Positions 14,201 through 64,000 of a stretch of 64,000 nucleotides of DNA are shown one piece after another. This stretch comes from Sphaerodactylus townsendi (Eukaryota). The number at the start of each line of letters is the position of its first letter. Position 1 is the first letter of the stretch. Made by a program: the position numbers and the translations under genes. Below the pieces are notes generated by a model, which saw only the letters and a program-made list of their open reading frames with translations, was not told the origin of the DNA and ran no database searches. Location of the stretch: contig NC_059435.1 in assembly GCF_021028975.2 (NCBI RefSeq), positions 2,294,001-2,358,000 on the forward strand, given 5' to 3'.

Positions 14201-15382
14201 TGTCATCCTGCTCCCCTCAATAGCCAAGCGGTCAGATTGAATCGACCTGGGTCTGAGTGAACTATGGTGCATTAGAAGATCTGGAACTACTGGCAACACA
14301 AAGGGAGAGGCACTGCAAAGCTCCTGGATCACTGAGAACCAAGGACGACGAGGCCAATTTGGAGCCACCAGAATCAGCAACCTCCTCTCTCGTTGAACCC
14401 AGTGCAGGAGCCTGGACAGCACCGCAAACGGGGGAAAGGCGTAAAGAAGACCACTTGGCCAACTGGTGGACAGGGCGTTGGTGTTTAGCGCCTGTGGATG
14501 GTAAAATCTGGACAGAAACGTCGGAACCTGTTTGTTCTCCTGAGAGGCGAAGAGGTCTGTCGTAGGAATCCCGAATCTCTCGGTGATCGATAGAAACACT
14601 GTGTGGTTCAGCCTCCACTCCGCCTCCCTGATCTTGGATCTGCTGAGCCAGTCTGCTTCCACATTCAAGACACCTCGAACATGCTCCGTTCGTAGGGAGG
14701 TCAGATTCGCCTCCGCCCATATCAGAATCTTGAAGGCTTCCTGGTGTAGATCAGACAATCTGGAGCCTCCCTGATGGTTGATATAACACTTCGCGGATAT
14801 ATTGTCCGTGTGGATGATGACATGACTTCGAAAGATCTTTCAGCAAAAATGTTTCAGAGCCAAAAAGATCACTCTGACTTCCAGGACATTGATGGGCATC
14901 TGTTGCAGATGTTCTGGCCAACTGCCCTGAGCATATAGGGATTCCAGTGTTGCACCCCAACCTATGAGGCTGGCATCTGTGAAGATGTGATAAGGCTCTG
15001 GAATTGAGAAAACCTTCCCTGAAGTCAGTTGTCGGTGCTGCAACCACCACTTCAGACTGACCTTCACAGTTGTGGGAAGACGAAGTGGCCTGTCCATCCT
15101 GAGGATGATCTGTGTGACAAAAGGGCGAAGCAGAGCCTGTAAGGGCCTGACATGGGCCTTTCCCCACTGAATCATGTCCATTGTAGAAAGTAGAAGACCC
15201 AGGAGGCTCGCCAACTGTAGTAAACTGCTCATGCTGCGTTTCAATGTCTGCAGTACTGCCTGATGGCTCTTCTGAACCTTGTTCTCGGGCACCGATAACG
15301 TGCAGTTGGTGGTGTTTACCTAGGTGCTCTATCATTCGAGACGGAGTTGTGGAGCTCTTTTCCTGATTGATCATGAACCCGT

Positions 15383-15691
15383 TGTAAAGATGCTGGTTGA
15401 GCTCACTCTTCTGATTGCCGTCCGGCCTTGACAGAATTCCTTCGGCCGGGTGAGGAGCCAGAATCCTCCATAGTAACCTTGTTTGTGGCCTTATCTTAGA
15501 TGTGTGAAACTAGCATTCCGTTCCCATGAGAATGTGACCGGGTGGTAGGGGGGGGGGGGACGGTTATAACCTGTAGTTTCGGAGGGAGCAGGCAGTCTTG
15601 CCATTCCGTGTATGTGTGCTTTCTGAAGTGTCTGAATAAACGGACTTTGAATCAATGCCTTTTATTTCTGCTTCTTTCGGAATTCCTTACA
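15383..15691 (+). mobile_element. Solo Gypsy LTR inserted in the DIRS-A RT region
   Basis: TGTAA...TTACA ends; 5-bp TSD CCCGT (15378-15382 and 15692-15696); AATAAA; similar to LTR 3190-3500. Confidence 0.93.
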
Positions 15692-19649: not shown

Positions 19650-20870
19650 CCAGACGTAGAGGACAGCCCATCAGCCTACCTTGTGCCTACGATCCCTCCC
19701 GATTCTATTATACGCAGATGATGCTGTTCTAGTATCGAGAACTCCAGTTGGGATGCGGAGGGCATTAGCTGCATTCTCAACTTATTGTGAAAAAGAAGAA
19801 CTGACAATTAACATAAATAAAACAAAAGTGATGGCATGTGGAAAGCGCCCTCCCAAAAGATCTTGGTCAATAAACAGAAACAGACTAGAACAAGTTGACA
19901 AATTTAAGTATTTAGGTGTCGTGGTTCAAGCTTCAGGGAGCCATGTTACTCACTGTAATATGATAACTGAGCGGGTAGAAAAGACAATATATGCAGTGCT
20001 GAAGTTCTTCCGTACTAAAGGGGGTTTCTATGTACCAGCAGCACTAAAATTATACCAAGCTAAAATATTGACACAACTTCTATACGGTGTCTATTTGGGG
20101 ATTGCACAATCGAGTATGATACAGCTAGAAAGGCTACAGTCCAAATTTTTCAGAGCAATCCTTCAGCTTCCTCCAGGAGTCCCAAATACATTTATTAGGC
20201 TTGAAACGGGAGTAATGAGCCTGAATGATAAGATAATGTAACAACGGTATATAAATGGATACAGTTACACACTAGTTCAAATGGTCTCAGCCCTTTCTAG
20301 CAAAAGATCCATATAAACCCTCATTAGGCTCCAAAGAGATGGAGAAGTGCCTTAATAAATGTGGCCTTCCATATAACACCCGTATGATCAAAAATTGGGA
20401 TCACTTTAAAAGTGAACTTGCAAAGAATCAAAAGATGTATCACGACAGTCCTGATCTGGCAAGATATTCAGATTTTTCCTCTATGCTATATACACAGAAA
20501 TATATCACTGCCCCTGCTCCTTATTTAACTTATCTGGATAACAAAGATCTAAGGAGAGCTTTTACTCTTGCAAGAAGTGCACATTTACCTTCTGCTGTCT
20601 TAGAAGGAAAATATCAAAAGATACCTTACGCTGCAAGGTTATGTTCTTGCTCTCTGAACTCTGTAGAAACTATAGAGCATATGTTATTAAAGTGTCCCCT
20701 TTATGAGGAAGCAAGGAAAAAATGCCTGTCACATCTACTACACAAAATGACATATTGTTCAAGTAAGTTTGTTGCCGAAGAAACTATTACAAGATAAGAA
20801 GGAGAATATTGCTAAATGGGTAGCAAAATTCTGTCTATTCATTATGAAAAAGAAAAAATGAAAAAACATC
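19650..20870 (+). mobile_element. 5'-truncated non-LTR retrotransposon (RTE-X-like) ORF2 C-terminal part
   Basis: ILLYADDAVL, ININKTKVM, FKYLGV and the RLCSCSLNSVETIEHMLLKC zinc knuckle. Confidence 0.8.
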
Positions 20871-21040
20871 AATAAGTAAAGAGCCTGTTGAATTTGCTGC
20901 ACTCCCTGACGAGGCAGGAAGATACTGGGGCAAGATGGCTATGGCCCGCCTACAGGAAGTGACCAAAGTATATTTCCTGCCTCCTTGATTGATGGTGGAG
21001 AATAACCCAAACAAGATGGCCTACACCATCCAGGAGAACA
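20871..21040 (-). mobile_element. Orphan DIRS 5' terminus (DIRS-B family)
   Basis: Near-identical to ~48234-48401, with no DIRS body adjacent. Confidence 0.9.
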
Positions 21041-21699
21041 ATACATTACTATAGTGGTCTTCAACTTTTGCAGGCAGGATAAACCCCACCCCCACAAGTA
21101 GCAGCATGGGACACACTGTGCAGCAAAGTCACCTGCAATCAGAATCACATGACAAGAAGCAGAAGAGGGTACAGCTTTAGGATGAACAAGAGACCTCAGA
21201 GATCTCCCCTCTTCTCCCCTCTCCTAGGCTGGGCCACTGTGGCAGTGAAATTCAAACACCCTCTCCAGCGCTTGTGGTATAGATTCCATCTTGGAAGAGG
21301 CAGGGCTGTGCTGAGTATTAGCACCTAGGGGTGGGGATCCCTCCCGAGCCCTGAGGGGGAAGCTGGTGGAAATTGGAAAAACCTCGTATTTGAGTACCGG
21401 CACATTTTTTGCAAAAAAAAGGCAGCCCTGGGAAAAGGGGGGGTGTCTCTCGCCACAAGGGCAGGCTGTGAATACTGGAGGACCAGTTGGTGCAGCCACA
21501 AGCCCAAAAAGGTTGCTCCATCAAGGACTCTGCAGGCTTTGCAGGACTCTGCAGCACACAGGCTGAAGGGTGCTGAGCTCTTCACACAGCTAAAGCCTTC
21601 CCATCACGGTCTGCAGATAATTACATTCCAAGAAATGCTGGTGCCTGTAAAGTGTTTGAGCTAGAGATTCAAAATTTGCAAAAATTCCAAATTCCTATA

Positions 21700-37513: not shown

Positions 37514-38097
37514 CATTGTATAGAGACAATTATAAAGCAACATTGAAGAACATATAAGAAAATTTACAAAGGTGGACTAAGTTAAAATTTTCAGAATTGC
37601 TACTTTTAAAATGCATATTTTACCATATTTTTTTATTCCAAATGTTACCAATTCACCTACAAGATAAAACCTTGAAAGAATGGCAAAATCCGATAAATCA
37701 CCTGGAACAACAACAACAAAACAAGAATCAAGTTTAAAGTGCTACAGGATTACAAGAAAAGAGGTCTACCGAACATTAAGTTATATTACCGGGAGTGGGA
37801 CTAGTATGGTCACAAATTGGATTAAAAATCCGGACCAAAAAATAATAAAATTGGAAACAGACAATTTAAAAGCAGGTATACATAGCTATTTATGGACTGG
37901 GAAATCAAAGAAGAAATATATAAATCAAAACAATATGCATGTAATGAAAAATGGGCTTTTGGAAATCTGGGCAAAAATACATAAAAGATTCAGCCCTCCA
38001 ATATCACCATGAATGTCTCCAATGGAAGCCTATTATAGTAGAACCGTAAATAAGATGATACTATAATCTACAGAGAAATGATGAGTACCCAAGGGAA
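37514..38097 (+). mobile_element. L1-clade LINE, sense segment left of DIRS-B
   Basis: DNYKATLK..LQRWTKLKFS..FKMHILP continues ORF2 from where the inverted segment stops. Confidence 0.8.
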
Positions 38098-39566
38098 CAA
38101 CCCATTGGATACTCACCGTGAAGGGGTCTTCTCCTGGGTGGTTGTAGGCCATCTTGTTTGGGTTGTTCTCTACCGTCAATCAAGGAGGCAGGAAATATAC
38201 TTTGGTCACTTCCTGTAGGCGGGTCATAGCCGTCTTGCCCCAGTATCTGACTAGCCGAGGATCAGACTCACCACAATGAGACAAGAACAATGGAACCACA
38301 ACCAAACACACAATAACATGTTGAAAAAACAAACCTAACCTAACAAGTCTGGAAGGGACCAAAGCTCAAAGGAATTCTCACAGGCTCTGAAACTCTATCT
38401 TGGAATGTTAACATTGCAGTTTTATATATGAAACACATTACCGGAGAAGAACAAGAACAGGGAGGGCCAAGATGGCCTACAACCACTCAGGAGAAGACCC
38501 CTTCACGGTGATATCCAATGGGTCGTTCTCCTGGATGGTGTAGGCCATCTTGTTTGGGTACTCCCCAAGCAGTGACCTGTAGGGTGGGTTCTGTTAATCT
38601 CCAATAATGTGCTCCAGGATTTTCCTTCCAAAGGAGGCTTGAATGGCATCCAGAGAGGTCAACCTACAGTGCCTCACAAAGGGAGAAGAGAGAGGCCCAA
38701 GTGGCCACCCTAAATATCTATCCTAGGGACACGTGCTTGACCAAAGTCCGGGTAGAGTGGGCCGTGATGCCACTGGGAACCGGTAGACAGCTGGCCTTGT
38801 GCGCCTCAATGACGCATGTCCTAATGCTGGAACTAACGGCCACAGAGGACATGACCTCACCTACCCTAGGGGGAACCATGTAAATAAACAGGGACTCACA
38901 TTCTCTGATATTTTCCTTGCATATGAGAAAGACCCTTAGGGACCAATGCACATCCAGGTGGTGCCATAAACGTTCCCTGGGATGGGTAGGGTTGGAGTAT
39001 AAGTTAGGCAGAACCACCTCCTTGTCGTTGGGTGGTTAGAACATAAAAATATTTATTTTTGATAATAAGGATAGTGGATTTAGGCTTGTTGTTCGTATCC
39101 CACTGGGATACGATGGGATACGACGTCACCACTGGGATACAATGACGACTTGTCACCATTGGGATACGATGACGACAGAGAGTGAGGGTCATCTTGATGG
39201 CGCCCTACTGGCCTTCCCCATGGTTTTAGTTATTCAAGGATTATCAGAGACACCGCTCTTAATCCTTTTGACGGTTCCAGATTGGTTATCCCAGGGTCAC
39301 TTGTGGCATCTGGTTCAGTTTGACCGCATGGTTCTTGAACAGAACAGTAGGAGAAAAAAGAGCTATTCAAACAACGTGACTGAGACGTTGCTAGCCTCAT
39401 GTTGTCCATCCACCATCAGGATTCACAGATCTTCCTGGAAAGTGTTTGTTCGCTGATGCAGGGGGAAGCTAATCACACCAGAGACTCTGTCACTAGATGT
39501 CATCCTAGATTCTGTCACTAGATGTCATCCTAGAGGATCCTAGATCCTCTGTCACTAGATGTCATC

Positions 39567-42500
39567 CTTCTTCTGCCGCGCCGTGCCTGCTTCCTTCTTC
39601 TGCCGCGCCGTGCCTGCTTCCTTAGACCTGGTGGGTGCCTTGGCAAGCACCCCCGTTTCTACTACTACCCCCTTCGCCGCGCCTGCTTTTTCGATCCTGG
39701 CGGGCTGGCGCTTGGGGGAGGCCGGCGGTCAACTGTGCGGCCGGGAGCCGACGACGACGGGGATTCCCCCTCATTGTTCCAGCGGAGACCCCGCCGACCG
39801 AGGGGCCTGCACTGCGGTTGGGGGTGTGGTGTTTGGAGCCAGAGTGGTCTGGTGGCCGTACTATCAGGGGTTGGTGGCAGAAACCCCTCCCCACCCCCTA
39901 ACATGGATCTCACAAACTGAAGTGCCTAACGGGTTAACAGTGTTGGGAATAGTGAAGTCAGCGCTGAGGCTTGCCGTGGGACGTGGAGATGCGGCCGGCC
40001 CCGCGGATGCTTCTGGTATTGCGGGGGCCGTGCTGAGGACACGATCGCTAGTTCTTCGTCCGCGACCTCCGCCGTTCCCCTTGTTGCCTTGGAGACCTGT
40101 TTTGCCGTGGGGCAGGCTGATCTTCCATTTATGTGAGAGGTGCTTCGGCAGAACGCCAGGAGGCGGGACGTCCTGGGGGAACGGAGTGTGGAGCTTAAAA
40201 ACTCCAACCACGTTACTATCTGCGCTACTAAGGAAAGGCGAAGGAGTACAGGCATCTGATGACATCATCGTCTTTTTTGCAACGCGTGAACCAGTCGTGA
40301 GAGGGCTGCATAGATCACGTTGCAAAGGGCAACCTCTGGACGTGGAGCTTTTGATCTCAGGGCTGGCCGAGGTGACTGGTGGCAGCAGCCCCTCGATCGT
40401 TGCCCCGACCATAACTCCAGACTGTCGCGACGAGGCTTTCTCTGACTTGGATAATCTGCACGTGATTGACTGGCCTGGGTGGTGTGAGCCCCATGCCCGT
40501 CATCTGTGCAGTGATATTACTATCATTACCCCTAAGGGGTCCAAGTAGTGTCACCGCCCATCAGAGAGCTGAGGGCGTGGGTGGCAGTTCCTTTTCTTCC
40601 GCCACTCAGTATCCCTTGGTGCATACTTCCACTCTCTAAAATCTTGATGTATTATATATCCAGCTGGCAATAGCTGTAGTACATTAGTTTAGCATTAGTT
40701 GTAGGTCAGTTGAAATTGCATTGTACAGTTAGCTTTACCCAGCCGGTATTTATTGTATTTGTAAGGTTTAGGTTAGGCTGGGATTATTTACTGTCAGTTG
40801 AGTTAGACCCACTTCGGTGGGACATTTGTCAGGCTGTTGAGTAGAGAGAGATCGGCAGAGTCATGGGGGCACCAATTTTGGGGCTGGGGATCCCTGTGTT
40901 GATGGGACGGGGTAGATATTGCGGTAGGCGGCGGCCATATGATAAAAGGCGCATGAGATATGGGGTTGCTCGTCCGCCTTCTGACCTCCGACCTATCCCG
41001 AGAAACGAAGGTGGTTGGGTTCGGGGAAACTCTGCTTCGTCTTTGGTGCTATTAAATGCCAGGTCCATCAATAATAAGACCATGGTGCTCCGGGATTTTC
41101 TTGGAGCCCAGCAGATGGACCTGGCATGTGTCACCGAAACCTGGGTGCGCGAAGGTGAGACCGTCGCCTTGGGCGAAGTCGCGCCCCCGGGTTTCGCGTG
41201 TCTTCATCAACCACGAACACAGGGCCGGGGGGGCGGGGGGCATTGTTCGTCCGTGAGTCTATTCCCTTCAGGGCCCTCCCCGTCCCGGAGATCGCCGGCA
41301 TGGAGTGTGTCGGCCTAGAGTGGTTGGCCCTGGAGAGGTTGGCTGTTCTCCTGGTGTACCGGTCGCCTAGCGCGCCGGGAAGCAGCCTGCTGGAGGTGGT
41401 GTCGGACTGGGCGCTGCGGTTCCCCAGACTTATTGTCTTGGGGGACTTCAACGTCCACGCCGATGCCGCCTCATGTACGGCGGCGGCGGACCTGGTGTCA
41501 TCCATGGCGACGCTGGGCCTCTCCTTAGTAAATTCGGGCCCTACTCACGAGGCTGGGCACACGCTGGATTTGGTCTTTGGGTTGGGGATTAATTTGGTCG
41601 TATCCTCTGTTGACAGAGTGCCATGGTCCGACCATTACGCCCTGTCGGTCCGGATGGACGTGCCCCACCGCCCCTGTCTAGGCGACGGGCTGATTTACGC
41701 CCGCCCGCGGAGACTTATGGATCCACTTGGTTTCCTGAATGCTCTGCGGGACCCTGAACCCGCCGGCACACTCGATGAGCAGGTAGAGGACTGGAATTCC
41801 CGGCTCTCTGATGCCATCGAGTTCGTTGCCCCCCGGCGGCCTCTACGCCCCCACTCTCGGCGTGCTCCATGGTACACAGAGGAGTTACGCCGTATGAAAC
41901 GGGCGCTTAGACGCCTAGAGCGAGTATGGAGGAAATCTCGTGACGAAGCTGCGCGAACATCTTATAGGACGTTTATGAAAGCCTATGAGATGGCGACGAA
42001 GGAGGCGAAGAGAGCTTTCTTCTCCTCCTCTCTCGCATCTGCTAGCTCCCGCCCGGCACAATTGTTCCGTATAATTCGGTCTTTAACCTCCCTATCGGAG
42101 GGTTCTTCAAATTCTCAATTGAGCATTAGCTGCGAGGCATTTATGAGCTTTTTTGCGGATAAGGTCGCGTCGCTCCGCCAGGACCTTCCCCCTACGTTGG
42201 ATACAATTAGTGAACTGGAGGCTCCCTTGCCGTCTTCAGGCCCTTGTATGGCCCAGTTTTCCCTGCTCTCTGAAGCCGCTGTCGACAGGGCCTTAGCTGC
42301 TGTTAGACCAACTACCTGTCCTCTGGATCCGTGCCCTTCCTGGCTTGTAAAAGCCTGCCGGGAGGAGCTACGACCCCATCTGTTGAGTATCATCAATGCC
42401 TCCCTTGAGCAAGGAGTCTTTCCGGATGGGTTGAAGGAGGCAGTGGTCCACCCACTCTTAAAAAGACCACCGTTAGATCCAAGGGATCTGGCCAATTACC

Positions 42501-44120
42501 GCCCCGTCTCGAATCTTTCGTTTCTGGGGAAGGTAATTGAGAGAGTGGTGTTGGAGCAGCTTCAAGGCTTTCTGGATGACACATCGGCTTTCGACCCCTT
42601 CCAGTCCGGCTTCCGTGCTGGGCATGGGACGGAGACTGTTCTCGTCGCCGTCACAGATACACTCCGTATACAGCTTGACCGAGGCGGATCGGCGCTGCTG
42701 GTATTGTTAGATCTTACCGCAGCGTTTGATATGGTCGATCACGACCTTTTGACCCACCGCCTGGCCGCCTCCGGAGTGCGGGGCACGGTCCTTCAATGGA
42801 TTGCCTCGTTTCTCCGGGGTCGGAATCAGCAAGTGAGGTGCGGGGATCAAGCCTCCCGGAAGTGCCCGCTTTCTTGCGGTGTACCCCAGGGGGCGCTATT
42901 ATCCCCGCTATTATTTAACATCTATGTACGACCCCTTGCTCAGCTGGTACGGAGTTTTGGGCTGGTCTGTCATCAGTACGCGGATGACACTCAGCTCATT
43001 CTGTCGATGGAGGGGGGAGCAGCCGCCGCCCCTGCGGCTCTACAGCATTGTCTGGAGGCGGTTGCTGGTTGGTTGCGACAGAGCAGGTTAAAACTGAATC
43101 CATCGAAGACGGAGATCCTTTGGCTTGGCCGCGAGGGGGGGGGCGGGACTTTTCAGCCGCCGGTGTGGGAGGGGGTCACATTGGCGCCGACCCCCTCCGT
43201 GCGCAACCTGGGGGTCCACCTGGATTCGTCTCTTTCTATGGAGACCCAGGTGGCCCATATAACCCGGGTTGCTTTTTTCCACCTTCGCCAGGCCCGACGG
43301 CTGGCCCCCTTCCTCTCCCAAGCGGACCTGGCCGCTGTGATCCATGCAACGGTCACCTCCAGGCTAGACTATTGTAACTCGCTCTACGCTGGCCTTCCCT
43401 TGCGCTTGATCCGGAGACTGAAACTGGTCCAACATGCGGCGGAGCGCTTGCTCACAGGCAGCGCCAGCTGGGATCACATTCAGCCTGTGTTGCGCCGACT
43501 GCATTGGCTTCCAGTAGAGTTCCGGATCGTTTTCAAGGTGTTGGTGTTGACCTTTAAGGCCTTACGCGGCCTGGGACCCTCGTATCTTCGAGACCGCATC
43601 ACCCCATATGTTCCCACACGGCCTCTTCGTTCAGTAGAGGCCAATTTACTGGTGGTCCCCAGCCCCTCGATGATGCGGCTGGCCTCCACACGGACCAGGG
43701 CCTTCACAGCTCTGGCCCCGGCCTGGTGGAACGCTCTTCCACCAGCTGTCTGGGCCCTGCGGGACCTTGGTGAGTTCCGCAGGGCCTGCAAGACAGAGCT
43801 GTTCCGCCGGGCCTTTGGAGAGACCAGCCGCTGACGGTGCCCCCCCTCTCTGGCCCTACATCTGGGCCTGTAACATCTATCAAGACCTGCCATTCCTCCC
43901 TGGGGGAAGAATTTAATATTAGGTACCGGGCGCCACTTACACCTATGCTTCTATTTATTCTACATTTTAAATGTTAATGTTTAGCTAGTTTTCGCTGCTT
44001 TTATAAGTTTTAGCCTATTTATGATGTTTTATGACTGTATTCACTACATGCTGTACGCCGCCCAGAGCCCTTCGGGGACGGGGCGGGATAGAAACCTAAA
44101 GCATAAATAAATAAATAAAT
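39567..44120 (+). mobile_element. Young, near full-length L2-clade LINE
   Basis: CpG-rich; long 5' ORF; ORF2 with APE and RT domains; 3' stem-loop GCCGCCC...GGGGCGG; (TAAA)n tail. Confidence 0.95.
40863..43834 (+). CDS. L2 ORF2 (APE endonuclease and reverse transcriptase), ~990 aa, one frameshift in the G-run at ~41227-41240
   Basis: LLNARSINNK, VTETW, GDFN and SDH (APE); NYRPVSNL, QSGFR, GVPQG, YADD and RLDYCN (RT). One added base restores GRGGGVALFVR and joins ORFs 40863 and 41198. Confidence 0.9.
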
Positions 44121-47100
44121 TACTCTCAAGTTGGTCTCAAGCCCAGGCTTTATAGAGCCACTCTACAACGCCAGGTGGAGTTAGACTGAAACTTGCCTCA
44201 TGCTGTAATGCTAGTTAGTTAACTAACTGATTCAAGGAGAACTAACATTCCTTTTGGAATTGAGAATTAATTATTATTACTTCTAAAATCAGTTCTTTAT
44301 TCTATAAATGAATGGCTGCCAAAGGTAACCCATTCTCTCTTGCTCCCCTTTGTGAAAGATTCCAGACAAAGTCTGAATGTATTTTTAAGAGTGTGGCATA
44401 TAAATATTTGAAATAAATAACTCCGGTTAAAATGTTTAGTGCACCAGAATTGTGATTTCACTGGGGACATCCCCGTTTTTCTTAGGGGTTGTGAAGAAGT
44501 GGGAGTATACCCCGCTTCCCACTTGGTCCAACAGCACGGACTCTATGGCCCTGATTAAGGTAAGAAGAGAGATTTCCCACTTAAGCCTGTCCCGTTTTTC
44601 TGGGGTGAAGCTGCTCGGTGAAGGGAGGAACCTGCCTTGTGGCAACAAATGGAACTCTAAGGAGTAACCGGAAAAAACTATGTTCCAGACAGACTGTAAG
44701 GTTGCTGCTTAGCCTTGGAAGGTTTTCGTCTGACAAGGTTGGCGGGACGCCCAGATTGAGGAGTGTTTCCAGTATCTGCAGTTGCTAGTATCTGTATCTT
44801 CTGTTTCTCTTGCCTGTCTGTGTGAAACTGTTTCAATGTGGTTTCGGATGGGAACTACAGGTGTTTATCTAACTTTGGCGGGAACTGGTGGGGAGCCCGT
44901 AAAAGAGGCTGTTTGAACGTTGGGAGGCCAGTTCCCGCATTGCTTGTGATCGACTTAGAATGCCAGCTAAATAAAGAACTTGAAAAGTTACTTTTGGTTT
45001 GGACTTTACTGGTTCCTTACACCCACTGGGCAGAATGGGTTTCCATCCACTTTGTGTCTGCCAGCTTGCTGTCCTTCCCTCCCGGTAGGGGGGAGAGGAT
45101 GAGGGAGAGGCCCTAAAGGCCAGCTTGGGTGTAAATCTGGTCAATTCAATATTGACAGATCCGTAAAGCGGCGCTGACTCTTGTTTTCAAATCCAGGATC
45201 CTATCGTTCCTCGAACTCAAAAAGGAAAGTACCCCCCCTGAGAATCCCAAAAAAACTGGAACCACTGTCTCGGAATGGGTCTCCGCCAAGTGGCTTTTAA
45301 ACCAAAGTAGAAAGTGTTCATCAAGGATGCTGCCATTATACGTCAAGTGGTCAAAAAGGCATCTAGGGTGGCATCCACTGAGAAGGCGACAGCCGCGAAT
45401 ACCCTTTCGGTACCCTTTCTGAGGCCCTGGTCCTCAGGAGGAATGATTGCTAGAAGGCGCTTTTGCCAGATGATAGTAGATCTAGTCGCCGTCGCAGAGG
45501 GGGCGAGGATCCTAGAAGCTATAGCGGTGCCCTCATGGATCCTGCCAAAGGCTGGGAAGTCTTCGCCTTTTCTATCCAGGGGATCTCTTTTATTTCCCCC
45601 TCTGTCCTCTCCGGTGACCAGGTTCCTGAGTGGAACGCATACTGGCCTCTTCTTCACCAAATCTGGATAAGAACGGGTTATAATGATCAGGAGCCAGGAA
45701 CAGTTTCTGAAAAAAAAAAACTGGGGAAAAACTTTGTTTTACCGCAGTTCTATCCCACTGTCTATGAGCTTGCCACAGGCAAAGGGTAAATAGGAGACTT
45801 CCTCCTCCACTGGGAAAACCGCCGAGGAAAGGCCCCTAGGGGCAACCCTTTGATGGCTTTCGCTGTACCAGTAGTAAATTTGGGTCCTCAGCCACCTGTG
45901 CAATCCTGGCTCTTCCGGCTCTGAAAAGCTATCGGAGGCCAGACTAATCTCCTCCCTCACTGAGGTGCTTCAAATGTAACCCCATAGGATGTTACAAATG
46001 CTCCTAGTAGATGTCCCTATGGAAGCCTCTCCCAACCGGGGGGACCGGTCTCTGTATGAAAGGGGAACATCAAGGACACCCCGGAGCAGCGTTCAAAGGT
46101 GTCCCTCAGAAGTACCTAATGCACAGCTTGCCTCAGTGCCATGCAGAGCTCTTGTCCTGGTCTCTACTCAGTGCAGTCAGGGCAGAGATAAGCTGGATCC
46201 AGAGGGTCCTGGAAATGCCTCCGTTCGCAGAATGCAAAGGGGTTCTGCCTTTATACTTTGGGCCAGCTCCACCAGCTGGTCACGTGAGGACAGGATTGCA
46301 GAATTCACGGATGTCCTTCCCCATTGTTAGGTCCATAAATTATATAGTAGCTTGCTGCCTCTAACGGCTTCTGCTAATGCCTAAGTGGGCTGATGACATT
46401 GTGGTTCCAGGCAAGTTAACTCTGGGACAGTTGCATTTAACACTTCCTGGGAGCCGACTAACTGACCGTAGCCTCCTAAACATAGCGCACCTTGTACTCA
46501 TAGACACTCTGTATCACTTCTGGGAAGCTGCGGTTTGCCTTTCTGCCCTACGACTAAGAATGATACTCAGTTCACTTCTGCATTCTCCTCTAGGTGTCCC
46601 TGTTCGGTCTCCACTGCACTGTCGGAAATTTGGTCCTAGTGTTAACTGAAGCCTTCCTAATTTGTTATGGCAGAGATTTCGCTTCATAGATTTGTAGCTT
46701 CAGAAGTTGGTAGCATTCCCAATGGGAATAATCTATAGACCTCCCCCTCTCTTGTCCAATTTCCATGAAAGTCCTTGTATGTTATTGGGCTTCAGCCAAT
46801 TTCGCCCCAGGGCTAGGCTACTGATCCCTCAGACCTTAATTGTTTGGTCTAGTCACACTCTGATCTTCTGTACAAACTGGGGGTTTATCAGAGTCACCTC
46901 GGCCCCTGTCACAGGCTCCATAAATCTTACTAATTCCTTCCTGAGCTGTTGAGACCTGTAATACGTTAGCTGCACCGACAGTTTGGGCCTCCTGCATTTT
47001 AGCGACTGGCTTCGGGTCAGAATCAGCCCATTTGACAGTTTGGACCTTTTTGGTTGGGGACTGAGTGTGAGGTTTCTGAAACCTGCGACACTGATATCTG

Positions 47101-47560
47101 AAATGTCCTTCCTGAACAGTAGAAACAGATTACCAATCCCTAGCATGTTGTGAGGGGGTATGTCACTGCCCTCTGAGTTATACACAGGAGTCAGCCAGTC
47201 CCTATCCCTCCTATGGGGAATGGGGGATCTGGATCTAGAGCGAGGCCTTTGCCTGTAAGGAGGGAGGGCAGGGGATGGCTGCAGCTGCTTAGAGACCTCC
47301 TCCCTGATGGAGGAACGCATTATGGCTTCCAGCTGGTGAGGGGAGAAGACGCTCCACTCCGAGGAAATGGCACCTGCCATGTTGCTTTCCCTCCCCCTCC
47401 TCTCCCCCTCTTGCCTGGAGAGTCCAGCTGGATTGGAGGCCTCTTCCGCAGAGGCATCCATCGGCTGCAGAGTTGGGACACCGGCAGAGGAAATGGGATC
47501 AAGGCGGGAAGATGACCCGCCGTCCTCTCAGTGCCTCCCCTCGTCGTGGCTGCAGTTGCA

Positions 47561-47942
47561 GCTCTCACGCCCAGACGTTCCTGGCGCCCTGTGTAGGGGC
47601 TGGTCGAGCGTGCGCGCCGACCTGCGCGCCGAGAGGGCTATGGCAAAAAGGCCCGCTGGCTAGCCCCACAGCTGCTCTGGGACCGTGGCTCTAATGCCCA
47701 GACACCCCCTGGAACCCTGTACAGGGGCTGGTCGAGCATGGGCGCTGACCTGCGTGCTGAGAGCGTGATGGCGAAAAGGCCCACTGGCTAGCCCCACGGC
47801 TGCTCTGGGACCACGGCTCTCACACCCAGACACTCCCTGGCACCCTGTGCACAAGCTGGTCAAGCGTGCGCGCCGACCTACGCGTTGAGAGGGTGATGTT
47901 GAAGAGGCCTGCTGGCTAGCCCCACAGCTGCCCTGGGACCGG
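47561..47942. repeat. Three tandem ~127-bp units inside DIRS-B gag
   Basis: CCCAGAC...GCTGGCTAGCCCCAC.GCTGC.CTGGGACC units start at 47570, 47697 and 47825. Confidence 0.92.
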
Positions 47943-48401
47943 CCGGTGCACACTTCCCTCTCAGCCACAGGGCTGCGCGGGGGAGAGCGGGAGGCTCAAC
48001 TGGCAGACCTGGTCACTGCCCTCTGTGTTCTCCACTGCCAAGCGGCAGAATCCCTCCATGTGAGGAGAAAATGGCGCCGACGCCATAGCCACTGAAGGGA
48101 AGACTTTTTTGGCGGGAAGAGGGAAACACGAGGAGGGCAGGGACCACAGACACAGAGTTACAAGGAAAAAAGACTACAAACTCTCACAGACACAGAAAGG
48201 AGTTGTGGGGATACAAAGGACACAAAGCCTATCAATAAGCAAAGAGCCTGTTGAATTTGCTGCACTCCCTGACGAGGCAGGAAGATACTGGGGCAAGATG
48301 GCTACGACCCACCTACAGGAAGTGACCAAAGTATATTTCCTGCCTCCTTGATTGACGGTAGAGAACAACCCAAACAAGATGGCCTACACCATCCAGGAGA
48401 A

Positions 48402-51932: not shown

Positions 51933-52085
51933 NNNNNNNNNNNNNNNNNNNNNNNNNNNNNNNNNNNNNNNNNNNNNNNNNNNNNNNNNNNNNNNNNNNN
52001 NNNNNNNNNNNNNNNNNNNNNNNNNNNNNNNNNNNNNNNNNNNNNNNNNNNNNNNNNNNNNNNNNNNNNNNNNNNNNNNNNNNNN
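51933..52085. other. Assembly gap (153 N)
   Basis: N run seen directly. Confidence 1.
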
Positions 52086-54030: not shown

Positions 54031-54109
54031 TCACATTCCTCTCAGAGAAAACTGAACATGAAAACAAAAGAGATCAATTCATATCCAAGTTAACCTATCA
54101 CAAGAGAAC

Positions 54110-57100
54110 GGTCCATTGGTTACTTACTGAGAAGGGGCCTTCTACTGGAAGGCTAGGAGGACAGCTTGATGGGTGTTTCCCAACCCGTTCTCAGGGAGGC
54201 AGGAACTTGAAGCTTGTCACTTCCTGGGAACTGCCTGGGCGCCCATCTTGATCTCCAGTAGGTGACTGCCAAAGCAGTGAGAAACTTTGCTCTGCATATA
54301 ACTAGGAAGCGATATGGTTAGAAACAGAAGAGGGATTGTGAGTCCCAGGATGTTAGTGGATGGTGTTATGGTCCTGGGTATGTGTTGGATTATGTGAGCT
54401 TGGAGCTGATGATCGGAGACTACTGCTGAACCGGGGGGGGGGGGGGGGGAAGATGTCATCCTAGCCTTCCAATAGAAGGCCCCTTCTTGGTAAGTAACCA
54501 ATGGACCATTCTACTGGAGGCGGAGGACATCTTGATGGGATCTCCCAGAGCAGTCCCCAAACAGGTGGGTCGGTCAGTCTCCAATGATGTGCTCCATCAC
54601 TCATCTACCAAATGTGGTTTCTGAGGCCACTAAGGAGTGTAGTTTGTAGTGTTTGATGAACATTGATGGTGTTGACCACGTGGCAGCGCAGCAGATGTCT
54701 GTCAGGGGTACCTGTTTCCTGAATGCTATGTTAGTGGCTGCACTGTGCGTGGAGTGCGCCATGATCCCTTGGGGAAGCAGGAGACCGCCGGCTTTATACG
54801 CCTCATTATACAGGCTTTGATGGTGCGGCTGATGGCCGCCTTTGACATTTGGTCTCCCACGTTGGGCTGTGAGATGTATGGATGGCTTCCGTTCTGATGA
54901 CGAATGCCTTGAGGGCTCTTCTGGCATCCAGGTTGTGCCATAGTCATTCAGTAGGATGCTTTGGGGTTGCAAAGAATAAGAGGATGACTATCTCATGTGC
55001 AAGGTGGTATTTGGAGCAGACTTTAGGCATGAAGGAGGGGTCCGGCCTGAGTACCACCCTGTCCTTGTGGAAGGTGCAGAATTCCGATTGAACCAATAGT
55101 GCCTGGATCTCGGAAACTCTTCCGACCGAACTGATGGCCAATAGGAACAACACCTTCATGCGTAGCCATTTTAGGTGTATGGTTTGCACCAGCTTGAAGG
55201 GTGACTTGGTTAAGGCAGAAAGAACCAAGTGTAGATTCCAGGTGGAGAATCGATGCACTGTTGGGGGCTGGAGCTGCTTGACCCCTTTTAGGAATCTGAT
55301 AACATCCGGGTGTCTTGACAGCGGTACTTCCTGTGTGTGCGGTAGGACAGTTGTGAGCGCCACCACTTGGTGTTTTAGTGTGGCGCTGCGTAGGCCCAAG
55401 TTGAAGCCCTCCTGAAGGAAGGCCAGCACCTGAGGTAAAGATGGAGTCGGTGGTTCACCGACTTCCTCCTGCACCACCAAACAAAGGCCTTCCAGGAGCA
55501 GTTGTAAATGTTGTTTGTGGATTTTCTACATCATGCTAGGAGGACCTTGGTGACCTGCTCTTAGTAGCCTTTTTCTCTCAGGATCCGCCATTCAACCGCC
55601 AGGCGGTTAGTTTGAACCATTGGGGCGATGGGTGGTGGATCAGGCCCTATGTCAGCAGGTCTGGTGGAGTGGGCAGTTGGAGGCCTCGGGACATAGCCAT
55701 CTCCAGGATGGAGGAGAACCATGGATGTCGTGGCCAGTGTGGGGCCAGGAGGATCACCATGGTTTGTTCCGCCGCTATCTTTCGCAGGACTTTGGGCAGG
55801 ATAGGTACCGGTGGGAAGGCGTAGAGGAGGGTCCTGGGCCATCAGGTCAGGAGTGCATCCACCCCTGAGGCATGGGGGTGGTGGAACCTGGATATGAAGG
55901 TTGGTAGTTGCTGGTTCTCCACGGATGCGAACAGGTCCACGGTTGGCTCGATGAGCTTGGTCATGATGAGGTGGAAGATGGATGGTTTGAGTTTCCATTC
56001 GGCCTCTGCTATAATTTGGCGGCTCAGCCAGTCAGACACGGTATTCAGTTGGCCTCTGATGTGTTCCGCTGACAGTGAGAGGAGGTGCGATTCTGCCCAG
56101 TTCAGAGTTATAATTGCTTCCCAATGCATCTAGGAAGACCTTGAGCCCCCTTGGTTGTTCAGGTACGCTTTGGTCGTGATGTTGTCTGTGCAGACAAGGA
56201 TGTGGGCCCCCTGTATCTCTTCCTGGAATTGTTGGAATGCTAGGGAGACCGCCTTGGTTTCCAGGATATTGATGGGGAGGGTTGCCTCCTCTTCCGTCCA
56301 AGTCCCCTGGATGAATTTTTCCCCCAACGTGGCTCCCCAGCTCCTGAGGCTGACGTTGGTGACCACTTGGACCCTTTTCCGGTGCAGGTACACCTTCCCC
56401 TGCGAGAGGTTGTGGTCGCAGAGTCACCAACATAGTTCTTTTTTCAGTTGTACTGTGATGGTGAGTAAACGGGTCCTGTTTTGCCATTATTTAGTATCGG
56501 AAGGGCCAAAGAAATCGTTGTAGTGGTCGTGTGTGGAGCCTCCCCCCCATTGGACCATGTTGAAGACTGAAACCATCAGACCCATCAGACTGGTTAGGAG
56601 GAGCAGCGAGACTTGCCTTTTTGTGGTGATTGAGTTTACCAGCTGTCGGATCTGCTGTCTCTTGTCCTGGCAGAGTGTTTTTGGTGGTGTCAATAATCGC
56701 CCCCAGGTGCTCCATGGTCTGTGATGGCGCAAGTGTGCTCTTTGCCAAGTGTGCTGTTGATCAGGAAGCTGTGCTTTGAAGAACCTCCCTCACCCTCTGG
56801 ATGTCCCGTATTGCTTGTTGTTCTGACTTGGATCGGATCAGTAGCGAACACGTGCATTGCCTCCCGTCGAAGTTTAGTGAGGGGGGCCAAGAGGACCTTG
56901 GAGAGAACCCTTGGGGCTGTGGCCAGCCCAAATGGGAGGGCTCGGAATTGGAATTGGTTTGACCCTACTGTGAACTTGAGATACTTCCAATGAGCCAGAT
57001 TGATGGGGATATTTAGGTAGGCTTCCGTTAGGTCCAGAGATGTTAGGAAGTCCCCTGTGATGTTAGGAAGTCTACTATTGACCGGAGGGTTTCAATGCGG

Positions 57101-60100
57101 AAACTCTGGAGCTTGGTGTGTTGGTTGATGAACCTGAGGTTGAGTATGGCTCGCTAATCCCCACTGCATTTTGCACTGTAAAGAAGTGGGAGAAAACTCC
57201 TGAGGATATCTCGTATTCTGGCACTTGTTCTATCGCTCTGATGCTGATGAGGTGTGGATTGCCTGTTGGGTCCTCTGTGCTTTGACCAGGTTGGAATTGA
57301 TCGGAAAGCTGCGAAAATGCTGGGGGGGTGGGGGGATGAACTTGTTTAGGTAGCCGGATTGAATGACGACCTGTGTCCACTGGTCAACGTGGCCATCTGC
57401 CCATTGATGCTGGTACTGTTACAGGCAGTCTCCGACTGGCATTGTTTGGCCGTCATTGCTTATGTGGCCCTCCAGGTCGAAAGGGCTTACCGTGTTTTGG
57501 ATTGGTGCAAAAGGAATTGGAGGTAGTCCCGGAAGGTCGCTGGAAACCCTGTTGTGATTGCCACCTTCTGCCATCTCTCGCCAATCTGGAGAGGGTTTTG
57601 TGTGACCTAAAGGTGGTTGTGGATCTGGCACACTGATTGGAGAATTCTGTTCTGATGTTTTTAGGCAAGGCTTTTTTCTTGTACCACGTTTCCACGAGGA
57701 TTTGGTCCAGCTCTTGACCAAAGAGGATGCCCCCCTGGAAAGACTAGGCAGCCACCAGTTGTTCTGAGGTGAGGTCTGCCTGCCACGCCTGATAGCTTTA
57801 GGGCCAGGGATCACCAGAAGGTCCTCCTCCGATGAACGGAGGAGCCTAGCAGGGCGATATGGGGAGAGGCGGTCTCGTAGGTATGCAGGTCCAAGGCCGT
57901 GAATGGCTTTGAAGGTCAAGACCAACACTTTACACATGACCCAGAACTCGATCGGCAGCCAGTACAGCTAGCACAGGACCAGAGTAATCCGGTCCCTGCT
58001 CAACGCTCCCATAAGAAGACTGGCTGCTGCGTTCTGTATCAGTTTCAATTTCCGGTTTCAAGGCTAAAGGCAAGCCCGCGTAGAGCGAGTTACAGTAGTC
58101 TAACATAGAGGTGACCATTGCATGAATCACAGTGGCTAGATCAGGACGGGAGAGGTACGGGGACAATAGCCATGCCTGCCGCAGATGGAAAAAAGCTGAC
58201 TGAGCCGTTCTGGTGACCTGGGCCTCCATTGATAGTACTGGGTCCAGAATCACCCCCAGGCTTTTGGCGGATGAGGCCAGCTGTAAAGCCTCAATATGTA
58301 CATTAGCAAGAGCCAAAGGACACTGGAACCTCTTCCCGACCCAGCCACAGGACTTCACGTGCTGTAGGATTTTAATTTCAACCCGACTCGCACTCAACCA
58401 ACCATGGCATTCCGTGCGCTGGAGAGGCTCAGAGATCAAAGACGGGCTGCCCTCCATCGTGAACATGAGCTGCATGTCATCCGCATATTGATGACACTGC
58501 AGTCCGAAACTCCAGATTAAACTTGCCAGGGGGTGCATGTAGATGTTAAAAAGCATCGGGGAGAGGATCGCTCCCTGCGTCACCCCACGAACTATGGGAT
58601 GTCGCCTGGAGTGCCCCGACACCACCTGCGGTGCAATCACCGAGAAGTAGAGGCCCACAGCCAACACAGGGCTGACCTCCGAACCCCAACACCAGCGAGG
58701 CGGTGGACCAAAAGGTCATGATCTACAACATCGAATGCTGCGGTGAGGTCTAATAACACCAACAACACCGAACCGCCTCTGTCCAAGTGAAGCTGGAGTT
58801 CGTCCATGACGGTGACCAACACCGTCTCAGTCTCATGGCCAGCGCGGAAGCTGGACTGGAAGGGATCCAATACGTTTGCATCATCCAGGAACTGCTGGAG
58901 CTGATCAGCCACTGCTCGCTCAATTACCTTATCCAGAAACAGGAGGTTCGAAACTGGGTGGTAATTGGCCGGATTCCTAGGATCTAACAACGGTCTTTTC
59001 AGGAGTGGGCAGACCACTGCCTCTTTAAGCCGACCCGGGAAAACTCCTTGCTCAAGGGAGCTGTTGACTATCTCCAAAATGTGGCTCTGTAGCTTCCCTG
59101 CCAGCTTTCACCAACCAGGAAGGGCACGGGTCAAAAGAACAATTGGTAGATTGTACAGCATCCAGCGTCCTGTCCACACCCATCGGGTCGAGTAGGCTGA
59201 AATAGTCCAGACAAGGACCCAAAGACGGCCAAGGGGCCTCTAGTTCACTCACTGTATCAATTGTAGCGAGAAGGGATTGGCGGAGGGTCAAAACCTTGTG
59301 CATGAAGTAGTCCGCAAATGCCTCACAGCTTAATGCCAATTCATTATTTTAGGACCCATAGCTGAGGTCGTAAGCGTCCGAATCACACTGAACAATTGCG
59401 CTGGGCGCGAACTAGCCATTGTGATAGTGGAAGTAAAATACATCTGCTTCGCTTCCTTCACCACACTCTCATAGGATTTCATAAACGATCAATATGAGTG
59501 TCTTGACCCCTCGTCAAGAACCCGCCGCCACACTCGCTCTAGCCATCTCAGATCCCGTTTCATCCTCCTCAGCTCCTCGGTATACCAAGGGGCTGGATTG
59601 GTACGGGTACGGAGAGGGCGTTTTGGAGCGATAGCCTCAATGGCTTCAGAGAGCCTGGTATCCCAGCTCTCTACCAGCTCATCAAGGGTACTGCCAGTGG
59701 GTGAGGTTTCCCGCAGAGAATCTTAGAACCTCTCTGGGTCCATTAGTCTCTGCGGGCGCCTACACAGTGGGGTGTATTATGTCCAGAAGCCACCTGAGCC
59801 AGACCACGGTGGCTCTAGTTACGGTGGCCGAGACTGCCAGGCTGCCAGATGATGGCTGCCAGACCTTCATGCACCCTTGTTAGTATCCGGTCTGAACGTT
59901 TGTCCATTTGGTCTTTAATATTGCCCACCCCATTCTTGGAAACCAATCGTAGTGCTACAACCGGGGCATCCACCAGAGGGGTCTGAAGCATGCAATTGAT
60001 GTAGTCAGGGATGGGGTACAGCTTCTTGAAGGAGGGGGGTATTCCTTTACTAGAGGCTAGGGTTTCCCATTCTTTCTTAATGCATCTCTGAAAGTACTCG

Positions 60101-61475
60101 AGGACAGGAAAGAACTCCCTATTTCTGTCTTTCTGTGGGAAAATGCCCTTTTTGCCTTTGGGGCAGCCTTTAATGTGTTAGAGAAGCTGAATAGGTCCTC
60201 TGCATCTGCGGGGTTTGTCAGTTCTAGGGCCGCTATGGTCTTGGTGAATGGGAAGGAGGTGCCTGCCTGGGCCAGGAGTCGAACAGATTGAGCCTGGTTT
60301 TCAGGCTGGCTCCCTCTTTGTCTGAGAAATGGTCAGAGTCCTTTTCCAATTCCCCTTCACTGACTTCCTCCTCTCCTGGAAAGGACAGGGGATCCCTCGG
60401 GCGAGGGGTAGCCCCATTCCTGGCCCTGGGGGTGGGGGAGAGGCTGGGAGGAGGGGGGAGGGCAGTCCTCACTCCTGGAGGGATGGTGCAGCTCATGGTA
60501 GGCTTGTATTTTCTCCCTCATGGTGTCCCTAAGGAACTCCACCAGCTGTCTTTGGGATTCAGAATGCAGGCTCTTGTGGCTAGATCCTCCCCTGGATTGG
60601 CCAGATGATCCCTTCCCCGCCCTTCCCCCACCTGTGCGATCTTGCCTGGTGCCTTGTTAGTCCCTCGTCTCGACCTCCTCCTCCTCTGCCGTCTCTGCAA
60701 AGTCTTCCATTGTGGAGAGCTCTGCCTCATTTCCAGTCAGGGGGCTGGCTCCACCACTCGTGTCCTCCTGGGCCTCCGGACCCTCTGTGCCTTCCAGTAG
60801 GAGGGGACTGGGTGGATGCTGATGAGGTCTGGGCGAAAGTGGCGCCAGGTGTGCCCCTGCAGGGGCTGCCGGTGTCTGCTGCTTTACTCCACGTTCCCCT
60901 GCCCTCTTCCAGAGTGTGTTCCAGCAGCCGCGGCTTTATTGAACGTGGCTCCAGTGCTCCCTGGGCAGCCAGCAGTTGTTTCCTGACCAGGTGCTGGACT
61001 TCCCCGGTTTCTTCTGGCTAGGTGCTATTTTGCTCTTCATGCCCTTACAAACCACCCATGTGCATTCTGCTAGTGAGCAGGCGAAGGCTTGCTTGTCGGG
61101 TGAAAAAGAAGCTGCCGCAATTGAGGAGCCTCGTGGCGGAAAGTTTTCCTGCCGTCTGAGGCTTGGATCGGGGGGAGGAGGGACGGTAGGGAGGAGATAA
61201 AGGAATGGAGCCGAATTGGAGGCAAGGGACAGGGGTATTAGTAAGGCTGAAGAAGGAGCGAGGGAATAAGGAAAATGTCAAGAAAAATAAAGTAAAAAAT
61301 AAAGATTCTGCAGAGCCTTGTAAAAGGAGCTGCTCTCTCTGTTGAGGCAGGAATTAAACTGGAGATCAAGATGGGCACCCAGGCAGTTCCCAGGCAGTGA
61401 CATGTTTCAAGTTCCTGCCTCCCTGAGAACGGGTTAGGAAACACCCATCAAGATGTCCTCCGCCTCCAGTAGAAC
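54110..61475 (-). mobile_element. DIRS1-type retrotransposon C (full-length layout, mutated, carries an L2 insert)
   Basis: ITRs ~54136-54260 vs ~61359-61475; ICR ~54450-54545; recombinase SVGRVSE..AHSTHS..TW..KHY; methyltransferase-like DLFAS..YAFPP; RNase H INILE..TDN; RT LDLTEAYL..LPFGL. Confidence 0.95.
57790..59760 (-). mobile_element. Internal L2 ORF2 fragment (no 5' end, no tail) within DIRS-C gag
   Basis: DPCPSWLVKA, LKEAVVCPLLKRP, HQYADD, LDYCNSLYAGLP; stops at LLVIPGPKAIR. Confidence 0.92.
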
Positions 61476-64000
61476 GGTCCATTGGTTCACTTACCATGAA
61501 GGGGCCTTCTCTTGTAGGCGATGGGGCATCTTGGTGGGTGATTCTCCACCCCATTTCAGGGAGGCAGGAAACAGAATTTCGTCACTTCCTGTCCAGGCTT
61601 GGCATCCATTTTAGCCAGTATTCGACTGACCGAGCAGTCCAAACAAGAAAGAAAGAAAAGCTTCGAGGAAAAGAACGACATCTCCAAAAACAGAGAAATA
61701 ACAACACGAATGTAACGTGAATTGTAACAAGAGAACCTGAACATACAAAACTAGTATGACACAGGAAAGGTTCCTGGAACTAACTTCTCCTAATCATAGG
61801 ACTAGATATTGGTGGAAGATTTAAAGAACATGATAGACGCTAACGACACACTGGGAGGGCCAAGATGCCCCATCAAGGCAGTGACTATACAAGGCCCCTT
61901 CCGATGCGGTGGTTGAACCAATGTGACCGTTCTCTTGCGAGCCTCAGAACGTACCTGGTGGGGCCTCCCAAAGAAGTGTCCCCAATAGGGTGGGCTGTCG
62001 TTAAGCATCTATAATGTGTTCCAGAACCCTACGTCCAAACACTGTGTCAGCTGCCCCCCATTAATTAAGTTTATAGTGCTTAACATATGAGGAGGGGGTC
62101 TACCAAATAGCAGCCTTGCATATTTGTTCTACTATGGCACTATGCCTAAACGCTGCGTTGGTGGCTGCTGACCTGATAGAGTGAGCTGTGACTCCTGATG
62201 GAACTGGAACGTTCATGGCCTTGTGTGCTTCCACAGTACAGGATTTAATATTTGCGCTAATGGAAGCTGCCGACATGGCCATGCCTAATTTAGGCGCTGC
62301 AGTGTTAATGAACAGAGTTTGTGTCTGTCTAACCGATTCAGTACGAATAATAAACGCTTTGAGAGCCCGTCTGACATCTAGGTTGTGCCATAATCGTTCT
62401 TTTGGATGGAAGGATGGAAGGACGATGGAAGGATGGAAGTACAATGTCTTGCTGTAAATGAAAATTGGATGAAGCCTTGGGTTTAAAAGTGGGATCTGTA
62501 TGGAGGATCACTTTATCATCAAGGAAGACACACAGGTTAGGGTCTATGGAGAGGGCCCTTAGTTCTGAAACCCTTCTAGCAAACGTGATGGCCACCAAGA
62601 ATAAAACTTTCATCCTGAGTCAATGTAAGCGTATGGTTTGCACGGACTTGAACAGCGATTTCGTTAGAGATGTAAGAACCATGTGTAACTTCCACCGAGG
62701 GAACCGATGGCGGGTTGGAGGTTGTGATTGTTGCACGCCTCTCAGAAACCTAAGGACATCCAGATGTTGCGAAGTTGAGAAACCTTGAAACTTATGCCAG
62801 ACTGTGGATAAGGCAGCAACCTGTCTTCTTAGGGTATTACAGCTGAGACCTGATTGGATCCATCTTCCTGCTGGAGGACCATCTGACAACAGTCTTCCAT
62901 GTATAGTTATAGCTACGTAGAGTAGCAGGACTTCTGGAAGCTAGGAGAGTATCCGTTACTGCTGCAGAGTAACCCTTGGCTGTCAGATTATGCCGCTCAA
63001 CCACCAAGCGATTAGATGAAACCATCTCGGGTCTGGATGCAACTGAGGCCCTTGATGGAGCAGGTTCGGTAAGACTAGAATTTGGAGTGGAGGGCAAATG
63101 GACAGTTCTTGTATTGCAGAAAGCCATGGTCTCCTCGGCCAATTGGGTGCTACTAGTATGATTTGAGCTTTGGTCCAAAGTAGTTTTGGTATAAGAGAAA
63201 TGGAAGGAAAGGCGTACAGAAAACCTGGAGGCCAAGGACTCACCAGGGCATCTACTGCAAGGGCTTTTGGATGAAAGTACCTTGACATGAACAGTGGTAA
63301 CTGTGTGTTTTGGGCCGTCGCAAAGAGATCGATTGATAGAAGACCGAACCGTCGCGTGATGTTCCAGGGCACCTTGATGTTCAGTGACCATTCAGCCAGA
63401 GAAACGGTCTGCCGACTCAGCCAGTCGGCTTGCAAGTTCAGGGTTCCTTGTATATGTTCTGCCCTTAGGCTCTGGAGATTGTTTTCTGCCCAGGAGATGA
63501 TCTTGGAAACCTCTCTGTACAGTCGTGAGGATCTTGATCTTCCTTGGTTGTTTACATGGGCCTTGGCTGCTATATTGTCGGCGCAGATTAGGACATGCCG
63601 ATTGGTGACAGATTTTTGGAAGAATCGAAGAGCTAACAGTATTGCTTTTACTTCTAGAACACTGATAGGCAGTCTGGACTGGTCGTCGGACTATTTGCCC
63701 TGGCTGTATCGATTTCCGAGACTAGCCCCCCAGCCCTGAAGACTTGCGTCTGTGAAGATTTGTAGCTGGGACGGATGCAGATACTGTCTGCCCTGCATGA
63801 TATTCCTTTTGCACATCCACCAACGAAGCTGAGACTTCAGGGATTGTGGAATCTGCAATCTCCTGTCTCTTTTTAGGATGATGTCCTGTGGTACGGACAG
63901 AGAAATTATTGAAGGGGGCGTGCGTGGAATCTCCCGGAAGTAAAAGGGCATTTGCGTTGGAGTCTATGATGGCTCCGAGGTGAGTCAATCGTTGAGTAGG
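61476..64000 (-). mobile_element. DIRS1-type retrotransposon D, 3' part (RNase H, methyltransferase-like, recombinase, ICR, right terminus)
   Basis: IFTDASLQGWGA, DLFAT..YAFPS, FARRVSELRAL, VTAHSIRS; ICR at ~61860-61960; runs off the right edge. Confidence 0.93.

Follow-up and report, generated by a model that had tools for sequence, protein, structure and literature searches.

A zero-spacer join of two different DIRS1-like elements in Sphaerodactylus townsendi and its likeness to a circle junction

In the model for DIRS retroelements a 3-bp circular junction forms the overlap of the two halves of the internal complementary region (ICR), and it recombines with an identical genomic trinucleotide without leaving a duplication (Piednoel et al. 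2011, PMC3266345). Most DIRS elements start and end with NTT, GTT included (PMC3266345), and an integrated element is flanked on both sides by the trinucleotide, one copy of which is derived from the target (Malicki et al., PMC7192593). Malicki et al. also reported that DIRS-1 prefers to insert into existing DIRS-1 sequences (PMC7192593), and "homing" into pre-existing copies in zebrafish was cited by Auvinet et al. (PMC5941688). Here we describe a stretch of 64,000 nucleotides (nt) from Sphaerodactylus townsendi (NC_059435.1, positions 2,294,001 to 2,358,000 of the forward strand; the window in the following) in which two different DIRS1-like elements, termed C and D, adjoin head-to-tail with zero spacer. 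To our knowledge DIRS integration has never been shown directly, and the circle-and-recombinase model rests on the anatomy of sequences.

The locus shares several features with the DIRS1-like circle model (Cappello; Goodwin & Poulter; PMC3266345), namely inverted terminal repeats (ITRs), a right extension, an ICR recording the end-to-end junction, GTT on both sides as in several listed elements, and the lack of a target-site duplication. Unlike in that model, the presumed target here is the border of another DIRS copy, only distantly related to C, and it is identical to the circle junction over 17 bp instead of 3 bp. Similar to the homing of Dictyostelium DIRS-1 and in zebrafish, a new copy would lie in or at an older one, which leads to clusters; however, these papers describe nested or clustered copies, whereas the present case is a terminus-precise, zero-gap, head-to-tail join of different families (PMC7192593, PMC5941688). 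No terminus-precise join between different DIRS families was found in the literature searched, which did not include Goodwin & Poulter 2001 and Poulter & Goodwin 2005. The locus also differs from an integron-like cassette array, which has at least three units and a dedicated site, in that only two units are visible and the window contains no other joins. In tandem arrays of bacterial integrative and conjugative elements and in the Xer-dependent integration of CTX/TLC at dif, integration by a tyrosine recombinase regenerates a usable border site and different elements can stack head-to-tail. In contrast to these att/dif arrays of bacterial chromosomes, with their defined att sites and recombinases of host or phage origin, C and D are eukaryotic retroelements on which a recombinase presumably acted. 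Cryptons, which are tyrosine-recombinase DNA transposons, resemble DIRS elements in their proposed circle intermediate and in short direct terminal repeats as recombination substrates, but they are devoid of reverse transcription, ITRs and an ICR (PMC3212892).

Elements C and D and their join

The features at and around the join are listed below; the coding direction of both elements is the minus strand.

54098-54109, minus strand: 12-nt flank adjoining the 3' end of C, TCACAAGAGAAC on the plus strand
54110-61475, minus strand: element C, DIRS1-like, 7366 bp, degenerate with broken open reading frames (ORFs)
54110-54262, minus strand: 3' end of C, consisting of the right extension (about 30 nt, 54110-54139) and the 3' ITR
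54450-54539, minus strand: ICR of C
54583-55453, minus strand: tyrosine recombinase remnant of C, frameshifted
55581-56408, minus strand: methyltransferase-region remnant of C, frameshifted
about 57801-59767, minus strand: fragment of a long interspersed nuclear element (LINE) nested in the reverse transcriptase (RT) region of C, in the same orientation as C
61358-61475, minus strand: 5' ITR of C, terminating ...CCAGTAGAAC on the plus strand
61444-61487: C-D join, the 5' terminus of C followed by the 3' extension of D with zero spacer
61476-64000, minus strand: element D, DIRS1-like, represented by its 3' 2.5 kb and continuing past the window end
61476-61633, minus strand: extension and 3' ITR of D, the 3' ITR found by an ITR profile
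about 61858-61960, minus strand: ICR of D, 88% identical to the D extension with five indels
62010-63151, minus strand: recombinase remnants of D, from tblastn with intact lizard and snake DIRS ORFs
62992-63864, minus strand: methyltransferase region of D, from the same tblastn search

At the join, the terminus of C (CCTCCAGTAGAAC, 61463-61475) is followed directly by D, which begins at 61476 with GGTCCATTGGTTCACTTACC. In element orientation the 3' end of D thus runs straight into the 5' end of C. The sequence across the join almost reproduces the junction recorded in the ICR of C, whose reverse complement at 54490-54520 reads CCTCCAGTAGAAT+GGTCCATTGGTTACTTAC. A repeat search returned this likeness as a 44-nt inverted repeat (54496-54539 versus 61444-61487) with 98% complementarity, so that the ICR match crosses the join and reaches 12 nt into D. 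Its sole mismatch, AAT in the ICR versus AAC ahead of G in the genome, is a CpG transition. Moreover, a second inverted repeat of 63 nt (54105-54167 versus 54450-54512, 90%) extends 5 nt into the left flank of C. AGAAC is found on both sides of C, at 54105-54109 and 61471-61475, and contains the AAC on the plus strand (GTT in element orientation) at 54107-54109 and 61473-61475. Since the adjacency is exact, a chance match at the level of motifs is excluded.

Over the alignable 3' 2.5 kb the nucleotide identity of C and D is 56%, and in the terminal 200 nt it is 69%. A local tandem duplication was rejected in view of this low identity and of the different ITRs. Likewise, the join is not merely an ICR read on the other strand, as full ITRs and element bodies extend on both sides of it. 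The initial annotation had described the gapless succession of the two termini, its close likeness to the ICR junction, the AGAAC on either side and the distinctness of the two elements, and our analysis confirmed all four. In the assembly the C-D join is genuine, and the annotation described it correctly.

Both elements are DIRS1-like in that they show ITRs (in D, the 3' ITR), an ICR that separates the recombinase ORF from the 3' ITR, a right extension past the 3' ITR which is matched only by the ICR, and coding regions. C also has an identical junction trinucleotide at both ends and no target-site duplication. C is a minus-strand element because its ICR lies near the low-coordinate end. Its right extension begins with GGTCCATTGG on the plus strand, and its ITRs (54156-54259 versus 61358-61461) are 94-95% identical. 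One half of its ICR (54450-54507) complements the 3' extension and ITR, and the other (54509-54539) complements the 5' terminus at 31 of 31 positions. The junction trinucleotide in this ICR is ATT (54508-54510) versus AAC in both genomic joins, a discrepancy which is due to CpG decay. A run of 17 G (54433-54449) stands immediately ahead of the ICR. The right extension of D comprises about 30 nt (61476-61505).

The coding remnants of C and D were placed by tblastn with intact DIRS ORFs of a snake (L002) and a lizard (L004). E-values for the recombinase and methyltransferase remnants of C ranged from 1e-55 to 1e-74, and remnants of RT and RNase H were present in C as well. Recombinase and methyltransferase remnants are collinear in C and D and lie on the same strand, and all of them are broken. 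The considerable length of C is explained by the LINE fragment, which interrupts the RT region and shows 67% DNA identity to a LINE within another DIRS copy of the window, termed B. The RVT_1 matches in C were considered as DIRS RT and rejected, since they belong to this nested LINE. Within C, contigs of three sequencing runs carry 67 other letters in place of 66 nt at 60245-60312, reflecting a polymorphism or else a difference between assemblies.

The target site and the proposed integration of C

The flank on the far side of C (54098-54109) matches the 5' terminus that the ICR of D predicts for D, GTTCTCTTGCGA, at 11 of 12 positions, the mismatch being a change of CpG to CpA. Five positions discriminate between the termini of C and D. 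The flank follows D at four of them and the fifth is a CpG transition from the D base; by our estimate the chance of the flank following D in this way is about 0.016. This suggests that the flank may be the original 3' flank of D, in which case D was there first and C then entered exactly between D and its flank. According to its ICR, the circle junction of C in element orientation reads ...AACCAATGGACC + (A/G)TTCTACTGG..., and the site that C occupies reads ...AACCAATGGACC in the D extension + GTTCTCTTGTGA in the flank beyond C. The circle junction and this presumed target have 17 identical bases in common, AGAACGGTCCATTGGTT. Identity of the partner sites at the crossover is expected for an att-like integration by a tyrosine recombinase, and it is present here over these 17 bases.

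From the observed anatomy, identities and flank signature we infer a circle, an enzyme and an order of events. D would have come first, entering at a site similar to its own terminus. In element orientation its 3' border would then have been close to a DIRS circle junction, with ...AACCAATGGACC ahead of GTTCTCTTG.... At a later time, a double-stranded circle from family C, which is unrelated to D and has the junction ...AACCAATGGACC + GTTCTACTGG..., would have recombined with the border of D within the 17-bp identity, presumably by means of a DIRS tyrosine recombinase. As an outcome, C would lie between the 3' end of D and the old flank of D, with GTT (AAC on the plus strand) on both sides of C. 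We give this scenario, in which D was followed by a C circle that a recombinase integrated at the border of D, a probability of about one in two. It is plausible and in line with the published DIRS model. Using a DIRS border again is a natural consequence of that model, which already predicts that the junction trinucleotide is left at both borders of each integrated copy. A terminus-precise join of unlike families is the footprint to be expected from the model if an old border serves a second time; its heterologous, zero-gap form is a modest extension of what has been published. The C-D join represents a new example and not a new kind, and as a single instance known from the assembly it supports the circle-and-recombinase model without adding a new principle.

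To compare flanks with termini, we used the copies in the window together with nine elements, distributed over eight loci, from three further squamates (Ahaetulla prasina, Pantherophis guttatus and Hemicordylus capensis). The 5' flank of C matched the 3' extension of C itself at 12 of 14 positions, whereas 11 ordinary insertions reached 2-7 of 14. The target of C is thus an outlier which mimics both halves of the circle junction. Moreover, the 3' flanks resembled the own 5' terminus of the elements outside the 3-bp core, with summed matches of 49 versus 32.8 +/- 5.0 (p about 0.001; p 0.0065 against shuffled pairings). The main contributions to this signal came from D (8/11), a copy of Pantherophis (8/11) and B (6/11). 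As the resemblance goes beyond the core, extended junction-like targets seem to be used, and a subset of integrations is suggested to rely on extended homology. The join of C and D likewise suggests that recognition reaches beyond the 3-bp motif and that different families have it in common. Outside the core, individual 3' flanks matched at 8/11 (54098-54109), 6/11 (38086-38099), 8/11 (L008, about 11816-11833) and 5/11 (L005, about 11140-11153); in most other copies the 3' flank has only TT plus C or T in common with the own 5' terminus. An apparent junction in L008 (about 15445-15545) was rejected, as it is the ICR of a minus-strand copy.

The initial annotation had further proposed that the end of one DIRS element served as an att-like site for another family and that cassette-like DIRS arrays are built in this way. 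The first part agrees with the anatomy, that is, the 17 shared bases, the AAC/GTT on both sides and the flank matching at 11/12, while the action of a recombinase is presumed. The second part was not supported beyond this single join, as we found none at the nine elements of the other squamates, and no third unit. A 5'-ITR profile gave no match at E up to 50 for a third, decayed DIRS left of C (left of 54097), and the pairwise scores of this region against four ITRs were unremarkable apart from one at the 1.6% level. A three-unit array with a decayed DIRS left of C is thus unsupported by the profile and by these scores. In a more general form, the borders of DIRS elements might be self-renewing attachment sites for recombinases of distant families; through site-specific recombination, mixed families would then line up head-to-tail in growing, ordered arrays, whose internal joins would be true circle junctions and whose units could be excised again as DNA. 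We regard this generalization as doubtful, though conceivable. If such joins are frequent genome-wide, they would offer a mechanistic account of DIRS clustering ("homing") as well as natural substrates for recombinase tests.

Alternative explanations and read support

Several observations weigh against the sequential integration of C at D. The heterologous zero-gap join is a single instance, and none of the nine elements in the eight loci of the other squamates has a zero-gap neighbour. At ordinary targets the resemblance of 5' flanks to the 3' extension was non-significant (p 0.12), so that a half-site preference was not demonstrated. Tyrosine recombinase sites are expected to have inverted binding arms on either side of a 6-8 bp spacer; in the junction such arms are weak, as the best of them (CCAATGG / CCAGTAG type) have 6-7 of 9 matches and enclose 6 nt, a result within chance expectation. 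A palindromic core site in the junction is weak as well. The 5' end and 5' ITR of D lie beyond the window. Moreover, two proxies of age gave no clear order of C and D: the ratio of observed to expected CpG was 0.40 and 0.32 in C versus 0.55 in D, and the identity of ICR and terminus was 90-100% in C versus 88% with five indels in D. Finally, sequencing runs under four organism labels, all in the form of short contigs (Logan), were compared with 59500-63500. None of the listed contigs bridges 61475/61476, and k-mer depth at the termini is about 600-1600 times that of single-copy sequence, with a high-copy stretch at 61376-61509. Over the terminal 130 nt the depth is 600 to more than 1000 times single copy, in part because the junction sequence is also present in all related ICRs.

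The read data bear most directly on an artefact of the assembly, in which two unlinked copies were merged via terminal sequence common to hundreds of copies and ICRs. Such an error would be in keeping with the depth over 61376-61509, which amounts to hundreds to more than 1000 times single copy, with the missing bridge among the listed contigs and with a sized N gap at 51933-52085, which shows that the assembly is not gapless. Yet in runs of two organism labels the unique sequence of C is covered up to 61466 and that of D from 61563, the high-copy sequence to be spanned comprises only about 270 nt, and a false join does not explain why the predicted terminus of D (11/12) occurs in the far flank of C. 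Since short contigs break in the high-copy termini, they neither confirm nor refute the join; on balance we consider an artefact very unlikely. The same low standing is given to a coincidence, in which C was integrated by the same chemistry but without any preference and happened to use an AAC/GTT trinucleotide beside D. In favour of this explanation, the trinucleotide stays at the borders of every integrated copy (PMC3266345), and the window is dense in DIRS copies. However, by a rough estimate the window contains about 2000 AAC/GTT sites, of which about 4 lie directly at the 3' end of a DIRS copy, and under a pure 3-bp rule the outcome would have a chance of about 1% for the five insertions here and far less genome-wide (again roughly estimated).

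Two further explanations assume that the elements were joined by other means than a recombinase acting on a DIRS border. In one of them, cDNAs of C and D were joined before integration, for example by ICR splinting or template switching, and a dimer circle was integrated as a unit; in the case of splinting, the ICR of one element would hold the 5' end of C to the similar 3' extension of D, and integration would proceed via the junction of the D 5' and C 3' ends. Over their first 35 nt the 3' extensions of the two elements resemble each other at about 85%, which makes splinting in trans conceivable. A hybrid cDNA also predicts the similarity of the flank to the 5' terminus of D, and the failure of the age proxies to separate C from D is compatible with it. 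Nevertheless, it requires two events in trans and the joint expression of two families with 56% identity, a C-D unit is not known from any other copy, and the DIRS-1 cDNA intermediates described to date are single elements (PMC7192593). We hold it to be unlikely. In the other explanation, host repair captured a cDNA or circle of C at the border of D through homology- or microhomology-mediated recombination on the 17 shared bases. The perfect 17-nt identity at the crossover would suit this, as would the 8-10 of 14 flank matches at some other insertions and the linear single-stranded DIRS-1 cDNA intermediates that have been reported (PMC7192593). On the other hand, both ends of C are exact to the base predicted by the ICR, without deletion or filler, as in conservative site-specific recombination, and in most insertions only 2-3 bases are common to element and target. 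Host repair is, in our opinion, improbable to a similar degree as a hybrid cDNA.

Other DIRS copies in the window and related observations

The window contains three further DIRS sequences.

about 12743-18399: DIRS copy A1
about 20868-21040: solo DIRS 5' ITR
about 38100-48401: DIRS copy B

None of these three adjoins another DIRS. A recombinase ORF whose homologues carry PF00589 is present in the sister copy A1, together with a Dam-like match that scores under the Pfam cutoff. The solo 5' ITR fragment (20868-21041) is 96% identical to the 5' end of B (48231-48401), has no adjoining element body and lies near a noted 5' untranslated region of SLC20A2. The LINE within B (39559-43834, plus strand) has open ORFs of 329 and 878 amino acids with endonuclease and RT by Pfam, and it looks comparatively young. 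In the 5' region of B (47580-47963), a 128-nt unit is present in three tandem copies which are 72-84% identical.

A splice-donor-like motif, GGTAAGT (GGTAGG in some copies), is located in the right extension of nearly all squamate DIRS copies that we examined (3' ends of L001-L008), at a distance of about 12-17 nt to the 3' end. In the window it occurs on the minus strand at 54117-54126 and 61484-61493. A1 has lost the motif by a deletion but retains it in its ICR, and the ICR copy of B has GGTGAT where other copies have the motif. In Ahaetulla prasina, a young DIRS copy (L001) contains an extra block at 11311-11487 in which a full ITR complement is fused to a second right half of the ICR; the block probably originated when the ICR underwent an unequal exchange with the 3' ITR.

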